Sequence record: OM718002.1
Length of the DNA: 64,000 bases
Reading direction: 5' to 3' (one strand)
This document shows positions 4,233 to 37,976 of this stretch, one piece after another (the stretch's first letter is position 1; every line of letters begins with the position of its first letter). A program made the translations under genes and the position numbers. Under the pieces are notes generated by a model. The model was not told the origin of the DNA, made no database searches, and saw nothing but the letters and a program-made list of their open reading frames with translations.

Positions 4233-6148
4233 TACTTTGGGTTCTTATAGGTATTAATAAACTTCTCTAGCAGGGTGTCCATTTTAGGAGCACCCATGAT
4301 CTTCTGTGTGATTTCAATAGCATTAACCCTACCACCTGTTAAGTTTACGCCAACTTCACGGCGATGGTGTTCACTAATTCCTTCCATCATTGAGAATTCC
4401 ATCACACATGTTTCACGTGCAATATTTAGAATCTGACTAACGTTAGGATATGTCGACACGATGTCAAGGTCGGCGATATGACAGAAGATTAAGGTTTTAT
4501 AATTCGGTAAATCTTTAACACACTGCAATCCATTTGGACCTGCCATGTATGATGGTAGTGTAACAATCCAATCATTATGGCCAATAACATATTGATCAAG
4601 TTCATGCACCATCTGATCTGAACTTGAACCAATGACACATGGCTCTGGTCTATTCAAATACCAGAAGTGCATATCGTCACATAGTCGTTTTGGGTTAGAA
4701 CTAAAGTTCTTATAGTCAGATGCCTTAGAGAATAGACTTATAGAGCGACCAAGGTCATTTACTTGTTCATCAAGTTGTTCTAGTCGAATGGAGTCGATGA
4801 TGTTATAAAGACCATATTTGATTTTATGCTTAGTCTGCATCTCACGGTGCCAATCGATACCACCAAGATGTGCAGTTTCTTTAAAGGTTAACTTACCAAA
4901 TTCCATTACATATCTAATAGAATCACCATAGGTAAAGTTATCATTTAATATAAAATCATCCACCGGTACCCATTCATTACTACCTACATTTTTAATATAT
5001 TTAGTAATAACGCCGCCTGGTCGGTCAACTAGTTGTTTATTAAAACCTTCAATAAAATCTTCTAAGTCCTTATCATTTTTAATGGTCGTGGATTTATCGA
5101 TGTTTAGTTCTTTTCTAAGAATAGACTCTAACCGATAGTTAGGATCACGTCCTTTAGCTAATCGAGTTACTCGATAAGTTGACATAGAATCGATACATTG
5201 AAAACTAGAGGGTGCTGTAATCCAATGCCATTGATCCTCCGGTCCTTTAGATTTAGTGACCCCAGATGCAGTGGTGGTCATAGGTTCGTCAATCTTAAAA
5301 TGGAAATACCTATAATTCTTAGGTACCGATGGATCAGAAAAAACATCAGCTGGATTAACGCCATAATGTTCTAATGTTTTTAAGATTCTGCCAATGTCGA
5401 AGCTAATATTCCAGAATGCGAAGAAATCTGGTTTCCAGATATGTAGTCGTTTAAAACATTCAATAATAATATCCACTGGTGTTTCAACAACCATTACTTC
5501 AATATCTAGACCACGTTCTTTAATTAGATGCGATAGCACCTCTTCTTTTTGTGCTTGTTCTAATGTCTCTTTCACTGGATCTTCAATATCACTAACCCAT
5601 CGTTTTAAATAGGCTAAGAAAGCTTTGTTCTTATGTGTAACTGACATACAGATAATCTGACCATCGTTCTCAGCTTCATAAACGTTGGTTTCGATGTCAC
5701 CGCCAGCAACAGTGTTTAGAGAGATTAGACCAGGATAACGTTCTTGATAATCATGCTTCAGATAACAGGTTGAACTAACATCACTGCCATATAGGTAAGG
5801 ACTACGCGCTAGTTGACGAAGAGATCTAGCCGAATAGTCACCTAGGATTTTACTAATCTTACGTTTCATGTCAATTTGAGTTGACATGTATTTAACTAAG
5901 TTACGCTCATATTCGTAATCTTTCTTTTCTTTATGGTTACGCATTCCTTTTGAGGTAATCCAAAAAGGACGCTGGTAGTTTTCCCACATCCTTAAATTAT
6001 TTGCAGTTGTACCATCTTCAAAATGAATTCGTTCTTTAACGAAATGCGCATCTGTAAACTTACCAAATTGATCAGTACAATAAGTAATATGTTTGGCTTC
6101 AATGCCCTTAATCTTTTTCTTATTTGTAACCTGTTGTTCATTAGACAT
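4232..6148 (-). CDS. Split B-family DNA polymerase, exonuclease plus motif A subunit (gp82-like)
   Basis: ExoI GDIET, ExoII WNISFD, ExoIII YNIID, and polymerase motif A DLDIVSTYP near the C-terminus. Confidence 0.85.
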   Translation of the reverse strand: MSNEQQVTNKKKIKGIEAKHITYCTDQFGKFTDAHFVKERIHFEDGTTANNLRMWENYQRPFWITSKGMRNHKEKKDYEYERNLVKYMSTQIDMKRKISKILGDYSARSLRQLARSPYLYGSDVSSTCYLKHDYQERYPGLISLNTVAGGDIETNVYEAENDGQIICMSVTHKNKAFLAYLKRWVSDIEDPVKETLEQAQKEEVLSHLIKERGLDIEVMVVETPVDIIIECFKRLHIWKPDFFAFWNISFDIGRILKTLEHYGVNPADVFSDPSVPKNYRYFHFKIDEPMTTTASGVTKSKGPEDQWHWITAPSSFQCIDSMSTYRVTRLAKGRDPNYRLESILRKELNIDKSTTIKNDKDLEDFIEGFNKQLVDRPGGVITKYIKNVGSNEWVPVDDFILNDNFTYGDSIRYVMEFGKLTFKETAHLGGIDWHREMQTKHKIKYGLYNIIDSIRLEQLDEQVNDLGRSISLFSKASDYKNFSSNPKRLCDDMHFWYLNRPEPCVIGSSSDQMVHELDQYVIGHNDWIVTLPSYMAGPNGLQCVKDLPNYKTLIFCHIADLDIVSTYPNVSQILNIARETCVMEFSMMEGISEHHRREVGVNLTGGRVNAIEITQKIMGAPKMDTLLEKFINTYKNPK

Positions 6149-33274: not shown

Positions 33275-34468
33275 CGTTGTGTTCAGATAAGTTCGTTAAG
33301 CTTATCCCGTCTATTAATAATAGACAGCTGCATGTCGCCATGCAGACCAGACTATATCTTCACCTTTGGCATTACCCAGTAAGGTGCTCCCTATTTCGAG
33401 TCACTTGACTCTACTCTACTCGGTTCACTTTCGTGCCTTTCGATAGTCGTTGAACGTTCCTATTATTTCTAATAGGCTTCGCTGCTGATTGTCTCAGTGA
33501 GATGTTCCAGCAATTAAAGGAGTTTTGTCGAGTAATATTTCTATTACAAGGAAACCATTGGTTAGGGTCACTTACGGCTCTTGGTGGCGCACCGTAGTGT
33601 TTTAAGCATTTGATAACGATTGTATTTCTCAATAGATTCATCTATCTCAGATTGGGTGAGTTTAGAAACGTATTCGAATAACCGTTCCTTATCCTCGACC
33701 TTACAGACAACTACTCCATTAAAAACTCGAAGATCGCGTTTCTTCAGGATATCTTGAATAGTACCTTTAATCAATCCTGTTTTTAATTGGAGATCAGTAA
33801 GGTTTACTGCTCGATAGAATGTACCTGTTTTAAAATCAATGCAATAAACTTCAATTGCATTCTTTCTTTGTTGCGGGTGGTATTCACCCGTTACCTCAAA
33901 AATATAACGTCCGTTATATGGTTTTTCAGTGTGTGCAAGAACTACATGTAAACCTTTCTTATGTTTCAGTTCAAGGAATTCTGCAACTTCTTTCATTGAG
34001 ATGAAGTTCCATACTTCCTTAGTTATTACATCTGTACATTTTACAGAAAGGGCATGTTTATTCGCACCTGTTATAAAAGCATGTTTGACATTACCACTAT
34101 GTGTTATCCATTCCAGATTACGATAATAGTTATTATGCTTATTCGTATCTTTATGGTTTACATCCCAATCATCAGGATTATCTGGCAATCCATTAAATGC
34201 CATACATACAAATCTATGTGGATATCTTATCTTTCTCTCGCCTTTATCGTTAATGATGTTAACAGTCAAGTATGTACCTTTAGATGATTTATTCTCATGT
34301 TGTGAGATAATATCATGGTTTAAGTTACGTACTATACCGAACTGGTTAATTTCATAACGACTAAAACCAGGTATTTTTCGCCAGTCTAATTCTTCATCCA
34401 TATTTCCTCACTGTTAGTGACATCAGGCGCCACACCCTAGTCAAATGCTTTTTTTCCTAACTAAATTA
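33275..34468 (-). mobile_element. Group I intron (1194 nt) carrying an HNH homing endonuclease in its P1 loop
   Basis: Full P/Q/R/S core at about 33320-33520; guide GUUUC pairs with exon end GAAAU; intron ends CUGAACACAACG. Confidence 0.92.
33568..34401 (-). CDS. Intron-encoded HNH homing endonuclease (NUMOD4-HNH, I-HmuI-like)
   Basis: WRKIPGFSRYEINQFG (NUMOD4), HRFV...VNHKDTNKHNN...NLEW (HNH), two C-terminal helix-turn-helix-like repeats. Confidence 0.92.
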   Translation of the reverse strand: MDEELDWRKIPGFSRYEINQFGIVRNLNHDIISQHENKSSKGTYLTVNIINDKGERKIRYPHRFVCMAFNGLPDNPDDWDVNHKDTNKHNNYYRNLEWITHSGNVKHAFITGANKHALSVKCTDVITKEVWNFISMKEVAEFLELKHKKGLHVVLAHTEKPYNGRYIFEVTGEYHPQQRKNAIEVYCIDFKTGTFYRAVNLTDLQLKTGLIKGTIQDILKKRDLRVFNGVVVCKVEDKERLFEYVSKLTQSEIDESIEKYNRYQMLKTLRCATKSRK

Positions 34469-35605
34469 ATTTCGGTGAAAAGTACAACCCATCCCTTTAT
34501 AAGGGGCTGCTTCTGCAATTAGCTCTTTAAATAGATCTGCAATGATTTGGTTATATTGAAGTACATTCTCATATACAAATGAGAATGCTTCACGAGTTGT
34601 CATGTTAAACTTTGCTTTTAGTTTATTGGTTAGATGATACTTTAATAATTGACAACCTACTCCCCACGGAATATGTAATTCATCATAATCATGCGGATCA
34701 CTAATAGAAGTGATTACTGCACGTGCCGTAGCGTTGAGACGAGCACCAAACATGTGACGCCGAGCAAGACCAGGCTTTTGAGCAATTCGTGATTTTGCGT
34801 AGATCTCGTAGAACTGGCCATATAGTCTTAGTCCTCGCATAGTCCTATTCTGAGCTTTAATTGGACTAAGTGGTACAGATGATGCATCAATACTAGCGAA
34901 GGTTAAGGTAGCATCAATTGCTGCTTCAATTGGTTTATCTAAGTAAGTACCAGATGTGGTTGATTCTGCTACGAAACAGAGTTTAGAAGGAACTGGTAAA
35001 TATTTAGGGAATAACTTATCTTTATTCTGAGCAACGAATTGAGCGAATTCGGATTTATTATTAGAAATAATATTTGCATCTAGTAGGAATTGGAAGATCT
35101 CATTGAAATTATCAATGAAGTGATTTAATCCTCTTTCAAATCCTCGATGCAGTAGCCTATCTACTTTTCTGCGTGTTTCTTTAGAACCAATAGATTCCAC
35201 ATCGTATCGATAAGAAGTATCAGTTAGATATGCTAAGAAATCGAATTCTTTAGTTACTAGATATCCGGTTAGCATAATGATTAAACGTGGGTTAATTAGA
35301 CTACGTACATGTTTTGGTGTACGAACCCACATTGATGGTTCGATAGGGCGGCTAGAAGTATTGACAACTGGAGTATTACAAATATCACAGATTACTCCGA
35401 GTTTATGTGCGTCTTCGATTGCTCGACAATCACAACTTACGCTACTTTCAATTGCTTCTGAATCTTGGAAATGAGAATAGAAATGCCTATCAAATTCTTC
35501 TTTCTCATCTGAGTTACTCGTATTGTAATCATTGGCATAAATACGTTTACCCGTAAATTGATCATGTACTTCATCATGATCAACAACTTTGGCATAAAGA
35601 CCCAT
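34469..35605 (-). CDS. nvRNAP beta' N-terminal subunit (gp55), exon 1
   Basis: CDC...CDIC Zn finger, KPGLARRHMFGARL, RAVI; ends FHRN; spliced product is 487 aa. Confidence 0.9.
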
Positions 35606-35630
35606 ACCAAACTCCTATTTATCGATTAAC

Positions 35631-35673
35631 AAAAAAAGGAGATATAAGCGGCCCCCGAAGGAGCCGCTATATC
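35631..35673 (-). terminator. Strong intrinsic terminator after the chmA 3' element
   Basis: GATATAGCGGCTCC-TTCG-GGGGCCGCTTATATC followed by TCCTTTTTTT. Confidence 0.9.
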
Positions 35674-35998
35674 AGTTTTTACAATGGACCACCAACGGAG
35701 CCTGGCCCGAGCCTAGCGTCATCTACAAAGCTTAACCTCCGCTCTTCTTTGTAGCATACCGGCACTAGTCTCATTTACCATCCATTGTAGTTTTTGATCA
35801 CACGTTACCTTTTGAGTAACTCCTTTCGGTTAAGTGATCTATCATCCTCGTGTAGTGATAGGTCGACCTAGACTAAGTCCACTAGTCGATTACTTCACGG
35901 AACCTACTCCTAACCGTTATCACCGAAGTGAACCAGGGTCGCAGTATTAGAATCGGGATGTTACTTATTTAACATCCCTATCTACCGAGGTATTTCCT
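35674..35998 (-). ncRNA. Candidate structured RNA in the chmA 3' region
   Basis: At least seven helices and two putative pseudoknots found by inspection; no ORF or RBS; GC-richer than the flanking intergenic DNA. Confidence 0.65.
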
Positions 35999-35999
35999 A

Positions 36000-37880
36000 T
36001 TAGTACCAGGTACCCGGTGCATTATAGGAAGGAGCGCCGTAAGTTTGACCCATGCTGCCAGCCATGCCAACTTGTGCACTACCAGAAACAGCCATGTTAC
36101 CCATACCGGTGTAACCAGCGAAGCGCTGTTGACCGAAGTTGGTAATTAGGTTTTCCATGGTTACAGTTACACCAGCTGCTGCTGCTGCGGCATCCATTGC
36201 GGTGATGAATTTCGGGTTAAAGGTTAGACGACGAGCACGACCAGTATAGGTAACGTTACCTAGGTACATCTTGTCGAAGCCTTTACTGTTATTCATACGA
36301 CGCACAATGTGGTCATTACCTACTTGAGTAGCATACCAGGTCTTCCACTCTTGATCGTTACCTTCAGACATGTTCATGGCACCTAGAACGTCAAGATCAC
36401 GACGGTCACTTAGTTCGCCATGCTCATCAGTGTAGTGACCGAGGTCTACTTCATGATGGTTGTCAAAGATGATCGGACCAGCTTCAGCTAGGTTATAGAA
36501 CTGACGGAAATCAGTGCCATATAGGTTAGTTAGAGCTTGGAAGATCAGGCTAACTGCACGAGCTTGGTTTACGCCACCAGCTGCATCTAGGACTACTTGC
36601 TCAAGAGCAGAGTTGTCACCCATCGGATCGATATCGATCTGGAATGCAGGGTTCTGGTTAACCATCTTGTTCATTAGCATTACGAAGTTGCTGTCGTCTG
36701 CCATGAATGCTTCGGTGCGAGTTTCAATCGCTTTACCTAGCTCTGAGTAATAACCAAGTGCACCAATATCACGCATCTTGCTGGTAGCGATCTTCGGCAT
36801 TAGGGTACGAGCCCATGCCTGGGATGCAGTTGCACGATACGCATTACCAAGTGCGAACAGCCACATTTCTAGAGTCCATGCTTGGATCCAGGAAGCCTTA
36901 CGAACGTCAGTGATAACGATGTAAGGAGTGAACTGCGGAGGTAGAACTGCACCAGGTAGAGTTACGCCGAACATACCTTGTTGCTGGCCAGTGGTCGGAG
37001 TCCAATGTAGGTCTACGAATAGACTAACTTGGTTTAGCTGGCTATCGGTATCATAGAACTCGTTCTCAGGTACGTTGGTTTTCTTACCACGGCTAGTGGA
37101 GATAACCAGGTCAGAACGAATCGGATTACCGCAGCTATCTTTAACCGGAATACCATTGTAGTCTAGGTTGCAGGTAAGCTGTTCGTTTTCTGCTTTGATG
37201 TGGGTCGCAATAGAGAACGGAGTCTCATTGTTACGACGTGCGATAGCATCTTCACAGATATTAACAGATTCAACTAGTAGGTTCTTAACAGCTAGTTCAT
37301 CTTTGAAGTCGAAGTCAGCATACACTGCACGGGGACCGGCAGATAGTACTTCTAGACCAGGGATGTTGTAACGGTTCCGTAGGAATTCGCCGATCTTGCT
37401 CCAGTATTGAGCAGTGAATACATCACGCGGTAGTACCTTCTCTTCAATGATGTCATCAGTTAGACCATTGTTGATCTTGTGGGTACGGGGACGGATGCGA
37501 GTACCAGGTAGGTTATCGAGTACTAGAGTACGAACGAATGCCTTCATGGAACCATTGATATCTTTAGCTAGTTTAACAATTAGTAGACCAGCCATACCAA
37601 CTTGTTGCGCATCGCGATCGAAACGATGGATATCGAAATCATCAGGTAGGTCCTGATGGCGGATTGCTTCTTCTTTTACTTTAGTGAATACTTGTAGGGC
37701 ATCTGCTGAACGAGCATCAGAACCATCTAGCCGCCCAGAGCGACGCATTAGATGGTTAATGCCAGTAGTTGACCCAGGTGCGCCAGCAGGACGTTGAGCT
37801 TGACGCTGTGCAGTGGGTTGCGGAGCCGGAGTGGTAGCTTGAGTTTGAACGGTGCCGATTTCGTTTTCGTTAACAGCCAT
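36000..37880 (-). CDS. chmA: Phage nuclear shell protein chimallin (gp54)
   Basis: 626 aa with a disordered Q/A/P N-terminus, optimised codons and a C-terminal FGQQRFAG motif; located between the DNA polymerase and gp55. Confidence 0.92.
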
Positions 37881-37952: not shown

Positions 37953-37976
37953 GTAATATAAATCTCAAATTTTTTT
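37953..37976 (-). promoter_or_regulatory. phiKZ early promoter of chmA
   Basis: AAAAAAATTTGAGATTTATATTAC. Confidence 0.85.

Follow-up and report, generated by a model that had tools for sequence, protein, structure and literature searches.

A modular structured RNA between chmA and gp55 of phiKZ-type Pseudomonas jumbo phages

In the model nucleus-forming phages, the essential gene chmA gives the first and most abundant transcript, which has so far been handled as a plain mRNA. Phage examples of non-coding RNAs (ncRNAs) derived from 3′ untranslated regions (3′UTRs) include ncRNA1 and ncRNA2 of PAK_P3 and the 298/297 spacer RNA of phiKZ (PMC10914365, PMC8545117). The chmA gene itself has early and middle transcription start sites (TSSs) and was described inside a six-gene operon (PMC8244752), and enhanced crosslinking and immunoprecipitation (eCLIP) of the PhiPA3 protein ChmC gave a coverage peak between chmA and gp54 outside annotated genes (PMC11077065, Enustun et al. 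2024). Here we analyze 64,000 nt of sequence record OM718002.1 (the window), which belong to a phiKZ-type Pseudomonas aeruginosa jumbo phage, and in them the ~330-nt element that follows chmA and is read on the minus strand, the strand of chmA. A sequence-only reading had described this element as one large, possibly pseudoknotted RNA that it could match to no RNA family. From the comparison with related phages we conclude that the spacer between chmA and gp55 holds an evolutionarily maintained structured RNA on the chmA strand.

Fold and surroundings of the chmA-gp55 spacer

The 394-nt spacer between the chmA stop and the gp55 start (35606-35999, minus strand) folds with a minimum free energy of −123.7 kcal/mol, compared with −100.1 ± 5.7 kcal/mol for dinucleotide shuffles (z = −4.14; 0 of 100 shuffles equally stable). 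Homologous spacers are present in 49 Phikzvirus records (95–100% identity) and in the Pawinskivirus phages PA1C, PS119XW, HPP-Temi, BRkr and HHBS36_1 (~84%), in part also in phiHQ and, in diverged form, in PhiPA3. The consensus fold, obtained with RNAalifold from 11 sequences of two genera (Phikzvirus and Pawinskivirus), contains 108 nested pairs with 99.6% of cells paired and 8 pairs altered on both sides. Partner-slid controls showed 0–2 double changes, and none of 500 column shuffles reached the observed values. Single changes from A-U to G-U and from U-A to U-G among the consensus pairs are compatible only with an RNA of the chmA strand, and stretches of 63 nt and ~100 nt are invariant between genera.

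The compensatory pairs across relatives and the z-score bear out a conserved multi-domain RNA that goes far beyond a terminator; conservation and compensatory changes were found in Phikzvirus, Pawinskivirus and beyond. Each string of the helices proposed in the sequence-only reading was located on the minus strand where it had been placed, namely GGGAUGUUA/UAACAUCCC (35978-35955), CCUCGGUAG (35990-35982), CUACACGAGG (35855-35846), UACAAUGGA/UCCAUUGUA (35789-35680), AGCGGAG (35743-35737), CUCCGUU (35700-35694) and the UUCG terminator core (35667-35648). The comparison upholds nearly all of the hairpins in that reading. The spacer is bounded by the following features.

36000-37880, minus strand: chmA, nuclear shell protein, homolog of PHIKZ054
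35997-36002, minus strand: chmA stop codon TAA (36002-36000) followed by an in-frame TAG; 5′ boundary of the non-coding spacer
35603-35617, minus strand: Shine-Dalgarno sequence AGGAG and start codon of gp55 (ATG at 35605)
34466-35605, minus strand: gp55, N-terminal part of the β′ subunit of the non-virion RNA polymerase (nvRNAP)

Over the 411 bases around the element, identity with the window is 100% in PaZh_1, Churi and further phages and 99.8% in phiKZ, where the counterpart sits between PHIKZ054 and PHIKZ055.

A permissive cmscan (E ≤ 10) of positions 35400-36200 against the 4227 covariance models of Rfam 15 returned only four chance-level matches (14.6–18.7 bits, with gathering thresholds of 48–90), none of them inside 35682-35999, and permissive Rfam scans of the PhiPA3, phiHQ, Psa21 and RP13 spacers yielded no family. 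The absence of a known RNA family thus held at this threshold. ARAGORN found no tRNA or tmRNA in the window or the homologous loci. The published literature, taken without the supplementary tables of TSSs and transcription termination sites, leaves the element undescribed beyond one sentence on the eCLIP peak.

The spacer contains no open reading frame (ORF) with a start or frame kept across relatives. A small-protein reading of the 31-aa ORF at 35679-35774 was rejected: its ATG is confined to the phiKZ sub-lineage (AUGAGA, with AAGGUC elsewhere), and PS119XW carries a frameshifting 1-nt deletion inside it. Strand and position of annotated spacer ORFs vary between GenBank records; short hypothetical-protein ORFs on either strand are annotated within such spacers in OQ992562 (PhiPizzaParty), PP968062 (HPP-Temi), PQ287642 (HHBS36_1) and NC_062581 (Psa21 gp057). 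As they are not kept between relatives, these deposited ORFs are probably annotation artifacts over structured RNA. ORFs at the same position in 201phi2-1, Phabio, Viktualia and Psa21 gave no match in PHROGs.

The neighboring gp55 gene is split. Relative to the intron-less homologs of PA1C and PhiPA3, a ~1.2-kb insert follows codon ~379 (33328-34465, minus strand), with a group I intron core at 33328-33573 (RF00028, 89.6 bits, E=5.9e-23), 2 kb from the spacer, and the exon-2 match resuming downstream. The insert carries an ORF of 277 aa (33568-34401), for whose phiKZ-lineage counterpart the annotations of FBPa36 and T2P give an HNH homing endonuclease. A group I intron relic was also considered for the spacer and rejected; RF00028 has no match there, and the negative is meaningful because the same scan detects the neighboring intron.

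Three modules and their exchange between phages

On the comparative evidence, the element is a set of three independently folding modules that assort independently among chimalliviruses. Of the earlier description, the structured element therefore stands, whereas the single unit gives way to separately assorting parts. The 3′ domain, module 3, combines rewritten stems with unchanged loops.

35680-35790, minus strand: module 3, three-helix 3′ domain of 111 nt (covariance model R2)
35780-35787 with 35682-35689, minus strand: helix P6
35763-35772 with 35709-35718, minus strand: helix P7
35747-35754 with 35723-35730, minus strand: helix P8
35774-35779, minus strand: invariant unpaired J6/7, GGUAAA
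35731-35746, minus strand: invariant unpaired L8, AAGAGCGGAGGUUAAG
35690-35705, minus strand: invariant unpaired J7/6, CCAGGCUCCGUUGGUG; the likewise invariant and unpaired J8/7 reads AYGA
35694-35743, minus strand: candidate 7-bp pseudoknot of L8 AGCGGAG (35737-35743) with J7/6 CUCCGUU (35694-35700)

The covariance model of this module (R2, window positions 35680-35790) matched the window (E=3.5e-31), Phikzvirus, Pawinskivirus, phiHQ and the uncultivated jumbo phages L171 and L180, and no others. The ChmA proteins of L171 and L180 are only 43% identical to that of the window. Across these lineages, with L171 and L180 added to the comparison, 8 of the 18 counted pairs in P6–P8 were changed on both sides with 99.3% paired, while slid controls gave at most one. 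Across the lineages J6/7, L8 (AAGAGCGGAGG(U)UAAG), J8/7 and J7/6 are unchanged, while P6, P7 and P8 have been rewritten by compensation. Such a combination of rewritten stems and invariant loops usually marks an RNA that adopts a specific tertiary fold or binds a specific partner. The G·U compensation is strand-specific and 16 pairs are double-compensated, both of which speak for selection on RNA folding. The candidate pseudoknot is complementary and invariant in 11 of 11 distinct sequences and hence gives no covariation signal either way.

In every lineage that carries it, module 3 lies 6–18 nt upstream of the terminator. In L171, module 3 alone is present: it follows the stop codon by 7 nt, and roughly a dozen nt separate it from the terminator. 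No R2 match was obtained in PhiPA3, and module 3 did not align to the PhiPA3 3′ region either, which appears to be a different sequence. With its invariant loops and rewritten stems, this 111-nt core is a good candidate for a new Rfam family.

Motif scans of IMG/VR recovered only PA7, PhiPA3 and chance matches; L171 and L180 emerged through ChmA-based retrieval. Pattern scans of metagenomes and GTDB genomes gave 84 and 50 matches, all of them chance or unrelated conserved coding sequence, in numbers that a 19-base pattern with 31 gap lengths would be expected to yield by chance. A marginal nhmmer match in a Microcoleaceae metagenome-assembled genome (L131, 7810-7918; E=0.009 in ~1 Mb searched, profile positions 14-129) lies away from the pattern match that retrieved the locus and is probably chance.

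Modules 1 and 2 make up the 5′ part of the element.

35846-35990, minus strand: module 1, four-way junction (RNAalifold, pair counts, covariance model R1)
35986-35989 with 35847-35850, minus strand: helix P1, CCUC(G)/(C)GAGG, enclosing P2a/P2, P3 and P4
35981-35984 with 35948-35951, minus strand: helix P2a, UAGA/UCUA
35955-35978, minus strand: hairpin P2
35905-35946, minus strand: P3, with the tip CAC-UUCG-GUG
35855-35898, minus strand: P4, with base GUGAAG/CU-AUCAC and distal UCGAC...GUCGA
35839-35861, minus strand: alternative hairpin CUAUCA (35861-35856)/UGAUAG (35844-35839), mutually exclusive with the P4 base and overlapping the first P5 pair
35796-35839, minus strand: module 2, three-way junction of P5 GAUCAC/GUGAUC, P5a CC-GAAA-GG and P5b GUUACU/GGUAAC

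The sequence-only reading had joined the 5′ end of the element to a downstream loop as a pseudoknot. Its CCUC:GAGG half persists and covaries (U-A to C-G), but as the closing helix of a four-way junction and not as a pseudoknot. The GUAG:CUAC half is broken by an A-to-U change in 5 of 5 Pawinskivirus sequences, and this change is instead compensated by U to A in the local helix UAGA/UCUA (A-U to U-A). Similarly, the hairpin CUAUCA/UGAUAG that had been proposed is 89% paired with one covarying pair, but it competes with the GUGAAG/CU-AUCAC pairing and is mismatched in Pawinskivirus and W10-2. The competing helix is 100% paired, also has one covarying pair and forms 7 perfect bp (GUGGUAG/CUAUCAC) in PhiPA3. 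With one covarying pair each, the two may be conformational alternatives.

The model of module 1 (R1, 5′ four-way junction) matched Phikzvirus, Pawinskivirus and PhiPA3 only, the latter with E=2.9e-10 and a 157-nt insertion in P4; there was no match in phiHQ, Psa21, D6, 201phi2-1, Phabio, Viktualia, Noxifer or twelve uncultivated chmA loci from IMG/VR. The PhiPA3 insertion (L002, ~2605-2760) takes the place of the short distal P4 hairpin. PhiPA3 keeps module 2 with compensation (P5 GAACCAC/GUGGUUC, U-A to C-G; P5b GUCACU/GGAGAC), HPP-Temi has P5b as GUUGCU/GGCAAC (A-U to G-C), and phiHQ retains module 2 although its module 1 has been replaced. In L180, an extra ~70-nt hairpin element upstream of module 3 (4401-4472) contains UUAACUGGAAAG and GCGAAAGC, which recall the module-2 junction UUAACCGAAAGG.

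The replacement of module 1 in phiHQ is an unrelated ~300-nt RNA with homologs in the chmA-gp55 spacer of Psa21 and in one spacer of the Ralstonia phage RP13. Members of this ‘type 2’ family lie at 4406-4556 in Psa21 (L015), 2339-2500 in phiHQ (L003) and 2406-2589 in RP13 (L164). Their core runs in the order CUCAAUUGCA...GGUCUGACG...UGACCUGCCAAAGUC-[stem]-...ACUUACGGUGAUGUAA-[stem′]...AAACCGUAU, with covarying stems (CUCGAU/AUCGAG, CCCAGU/ACUGGG and CCAGAU/AUCUGG; AGGUC/GACCU versus UAGUC/GACUA) and no Rfam match, and a UUAA-N-GNRA motif recurs in them as well (CUUAAGCGAAAGCG). The type-2 RNA is in the chmA 3′UTR of Psa21, a P. syringae phage, and directly upstream of tRNA-Leu in RP13, the record of which has a second match elsewhere.

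Between Psa21 and D6 (ChmA 84%, gp55 93% identical) there is a clean presence/absence of ~350 nt between the stop codon and the common terminator, and Noxifer has the terminator only. Judged from these alignments, the modules behave as a cassette that is placed upstream of a pre-existing terminator. In 201phi2-1 (L016, 4259-4470), Phabio (L018, 4253-4530) and Viktualia (L019, 4262-4510), 150–280 nt of hairpin-rich non-coding sequence extend from the chmA stop to a UUCG terminator, with common motifs such as UGGGAUCGAAAGGUCCCA, CC(A/G)CCUAAAU(A/G)CUGG and CCAGUUA(G/A)(A/C)UCUGGACC, particular to these phages. Long structured chmA 3′UTRs thus seem to be the rule in Pseudomonas chimalliviruses, with sequence families that differ.

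The unrelated structured segments at one and the same site, type-2 in Psa21 and others in 201phi2-1, Phabio and Viktualia, would fit a generic stabilizer or spacer, in which any compact structure guards the chmA mRNA from 3′ exonucleases or insulates the terminator from terminating ribosomes with no sequence-specific partner. Near-neutral divergence within the phiKZ lineage and helices kept by compensation also agree with this. However, it leaves unexplained why the loops and junctions of module 3 are identical while three stems were rewritten, and why 63 nt and ~100 nt are invariant between genera; D6 and Noxifer, moreover, cope with ~30 nt. We consider a generic role distinctly improbable.

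ChmA and gp55 of Pawinskivirus are 63% and 83% identical to those of PhiPA3, with phiKZ outside at 46–48% and 65–67%. The spacers, in contrast, share 84–86% identity when phiKZ is compared with Pawinskivirus and ~52% when Pawinskivirus is compared with PhiPA3. In a sliding window, the island of 83–100% identity between phiKZ and Pawinskivirus has its borders precisely at the chmA stop and the start of gp55, and the order of similarity is reversed in its flanks; hairpin P2 still groups Pawinskivirus with PhiPA3. Because the spacer similarity contradicts the flanking-gene tree, these data indicate that most of the cassette was exchanged laterally, and relatively recently, between co-infecting P. 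aeruginosa phages. Runaway divergence in PhiPA3 would be a less parsimonious alternative. The comparisons further indicate that purifying selection on folding and on specific unpaired segments overlies the exchange.

Lateral exchange and insertion/deletion behavior, together with the genuine group I intron and its HNH ORF 2 kb downstream in gp55, could also point to a sequence without RNA function: a selfish element or relic, such as a degenerate intron or the remnant of a mobile element, or an element that acts as DNA, such as a site of replication or packaging. We find this very improbable. The Rfam scan that found the neighboring intron showed no group I or group II intron, ribozyme or other signal in the spacer; the element has no terminal inverted or direct repeats and no paralog within the 64-kb window (nhmmer, R1, R2); and both the strand-specific G·U changes and the double-compensated pairs speak for an RNA.

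A host-directed or counter-defence RNA deserves more weight. It would act in trans as a decoy or sponge for a P. aeruginosa RNA-binding regulator, ribonuclease or RNA-sensing immune protein, expressed at once via the first abundant mRNA. Exchange and presence/absence at hot spots are typical of accessory, anti-defence loci, and both are seen here. The patchy distribution tracks the host over the phage phylogeny: modules 1 and 2 together are confined to phages of P. aeruginosa, where they span three genera, and relatives on P. syringae, P. fluorescens and P. chlororaphis lack them. Invariant loops and covarying stems would suit such a role too. Against it, host restriction is incomplete, as uncultivated phages similar to those of P. 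syringae (with an identical Psa21-type terminator) carry module 3 too, and co-infection alone accounts for exchange that tracks the host. Two sponge variants were rejected. GGA, GGAG and AGGAG are not enriched over dinucleotide shuffles, which leaves an anti-Shine-Dalgarno or RsmA/CsrA sponge unsupported; the 326 nt contain 8 GGA with 7.6 expected (P=0.52), most of which are lost in Pawinskivirus or PhiPA3. On balance we regard a host-directed RNA as unlikely, though a real contender.

The terminator and the possible role of the RNA

The element has no terminator before its own 3′ end, where a strong intrinsic terminator closes it, 30 nt upstream of gp55.

35631-35673, minus strand: intrinsic terminator with the stem GAUAUAGCGGCUCC-UUCG-GGGGCCGCUUAUAUC (35641-35673), then UCC and U7 (35631-35637)

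This terminator has 13 consensus pairs with two wobble-type changes and folds alone at −18.7 kcal/mol. A GC-rich hairpin with a U tract, as in Rho-independent termination, is found only in the last ~45 nt and not across the 330-nt element. A simple terminator scanner missed it, probably owing to the 3 nt between the extended stem and the U run. D6, Noxifer, 201phi2-1, Viktualia and Psa21 each have an equivalent terminator after chmA.

Several features of this arrangement could suggest that the element controls the chmA terminator in cis, and with it the read-through to gp55 and the downstream nvRNAP genes, as a put-like processive antiterminator, an attenuator that responds to a protein or ligand, or a riboswitch. 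As the sequence-only reading had remarked, no early-promoter motif precedes gp55: the core TATATTAC lies upstream of chmA at 37953-37960 and was not found in the spacer, including the 30 nt between terminator and gp55. Module 3 invariably sits close to the terminator; its invariant junctions and covarying stems form an aptamer-like signature; GGCUCC in J7/6 repeats the 5′ arm of the terminator, and GGAGG in L8 is similar to the 3′ arm. This signature is, however, also common to protein-binding RNAs and ribozymes and therefore non-diagnostic. Pairing of all upstream sequence with each terminator arm (RNAduplex) gave −11.1 and −14.7 kcal/mol in the window, which falls inside the range of shuffled controls (means of −12.2 and −13.7), and the best upstream partners differ between lineages. 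Furthermore, the linker that joins P6 to the terminator shows no conservation, D6 and Noxifer keep the chmA-terminator-gp55 layout in ~30 nt without the cassette, and the Rfam scan of the spacer at E ≤ 10 found no riboswitch or leader. The antitermination switch put forward earlier is not supported by these results; we judge terminator control improbable in general, and a ligand-controlled terminator in particular unlikely and unsupported.

Two AGGAG repeats, UAGGAGU in the junction J3/4 (35905-35911) and AGGAGUU in the module-2 junction (35818-35824), echo the Shine-Dalgarno region of gp55, AUAGGAGUUUGG (35611-35617). In Pawinskivirus, the gp55 leader UAGGAAGUAGGU is likewise similar to J3/4, UAGGAGUAGGU. 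This may be coincidence, with non-significant enrichment of AGGAG (P=0.12).

The reading that we tentatively favor, with somewhat less than even confidence, is that of an ncRNA cassette embedded in the chmA 3′UTR, stable after release, that acts by partner binding at its invariant loops. The cassette would be a ‘passenger’ in the 3′UTR of the most abundant early mRNA, and owing to this position it would need no promoter or terminator of its own. Termination, an endonucleolytic cut or both would release it, and the compact fold with the terminator hairpin would leave a stable RNA. This RNA would bind its partner sequence-specifically via the invariant single-stranded or pseudoknotted segments GGUAAA, AAGAGCGGAGGUUAAG and CCAGGCUCCGUUGGUG, and protection of the chmA mRNA 3′ end could come as a by-product in cis. 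The likeliest partner would be a protein, and phage ChmC is the sole candidate for which there are any data. Binding by ChmC, one of the roles suggested in the sequence-only reading, finds some published support in the eCLIP peak at the homologous PhiPA3 spacer (PMC11077065). The export tag and the shell-nucleation scaffold that it also named would be speculative roles.

Several observations weigh against this reading of a partner-binding 3′UTR RNA. ChmC binds phage RNAs with little specificity (PMC11077065), so that the peak may reflect abundance alone, and because PhiPA3 lacks module 3, the peak covers modules 1 and 2 and an unrelated 3′ part. The phiKZ papers on differential RNA sequencing (dRNA-seq), Grad-seq and ONT-cappable-seq, which focus on TSS-linked and 5′UTR species, name other ncRNAs and not the element. 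D6 and Noxifer are without any cassette, so the core infection cycle does not require it. Spacer divergence within the phiKZ lineage is 0.3–5%, near the level of third codon positions in the flanking genes (1–7%). Strong constraint therefore does not act on much of the sequence, and recent transfer, instead of selection, may account for part of the identity seen across genera.

A bolder version, which we regard as a long shot, would make the chmA 3′UTR of nucleus-forming jumbo phages a docking site for horizontally traded RNA ‘genes’. Module 3 would then be a new aptamer- or ribozyme-class fold that senses a metabolite or a phage or host protein and either couples shell-protein and nvRNAP expression or disarms RNA-directed host defence in the first minutes of infection.

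The chmA transcript now has a conserved multi-module RNA attached to it, with helix coordinates precise enough for compensatory-mutation designs. The fold offers a structural explanation for the unexplained ChmC eCLIP peak and evidence for ncRNA modules traded as cassettes between jumbo-phage genera. It also provides an entry point to RNA-level regulation, and possibly to RNA-protein recognition or export, in Chimalliviridae.

Comparison with known systems

Two classes of cis-acting or degradation-blocking RNAs share some traits with the element. Like the processive antitermination RNAs put of HK022 and EAR, it is a structured RNA transcribed shortly before a terminator, beyond which essential genes follow. 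HK022 put, however, consists of two simple stem-loops acting on host RNA polymerase; no similarity to it was found, and the terminator context of the element also occurs in relatives without the element. The xrRNAs behind flavivirus sfRNA are pseudoknotted 3′UTR modules that frequently appear in duplicated or shuffled form, and through them a stable non-coding fragment remains of an abundant viral mRNA; in the element the pseudoknot is a candidate only. The xrRNAs block the 5′–3′ exonuclease Xrn1, an activity that, to our knowledge, is not known in Pseudomonas.

The GOLLD, ROOL and HEARO/OLE class of large structured ncRNAs, which phages and prophages often carry, resembles the element in multi-helix architecture, covarying stems, conserved junctions and carriage by phages. 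The element differs from it in having no Rfam match (E ≤ 10), a smaller size, separable modules and a fixed 3′UTR position. As regards exchange, a parallel is offered by the PeSL (promoter-early stem-loop) cassettes of T4-type phages, reportedly described by Arbiol et al. in 2010, which are likewise intergenic non-coding cassettes that related phages swap at gene boundaries during co-infection. As short units of a promoter plus a hairpin, PeSLs work at the level of DNA or transcription, whereas the element is a large folded RNA.

In position, the element agrees with 3′UTR-derived ncRNAs that use the terminator of their mRNA, such as the CpxQ/SdhX-type small RNAs: it extends from the stop codon to the terminator of a highly expressed gene, on the same strand and with no promoter of its own, and the published CLIP peak may point indirectly to a discrete abundant species. 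It departs from them in its ~330 nt, compared with 50–210 nt, in its multi-domain architecture with junctions and in having no evident seed-pairing target. The element is best classed as a phage 3′UTR-embedded structured ncRNA, and what stands out is the modular, laterally exchanged architecture and the 111-nt core, whose loops are invariant and whose stems covary fully in phages with shell proteins only 43% identical.

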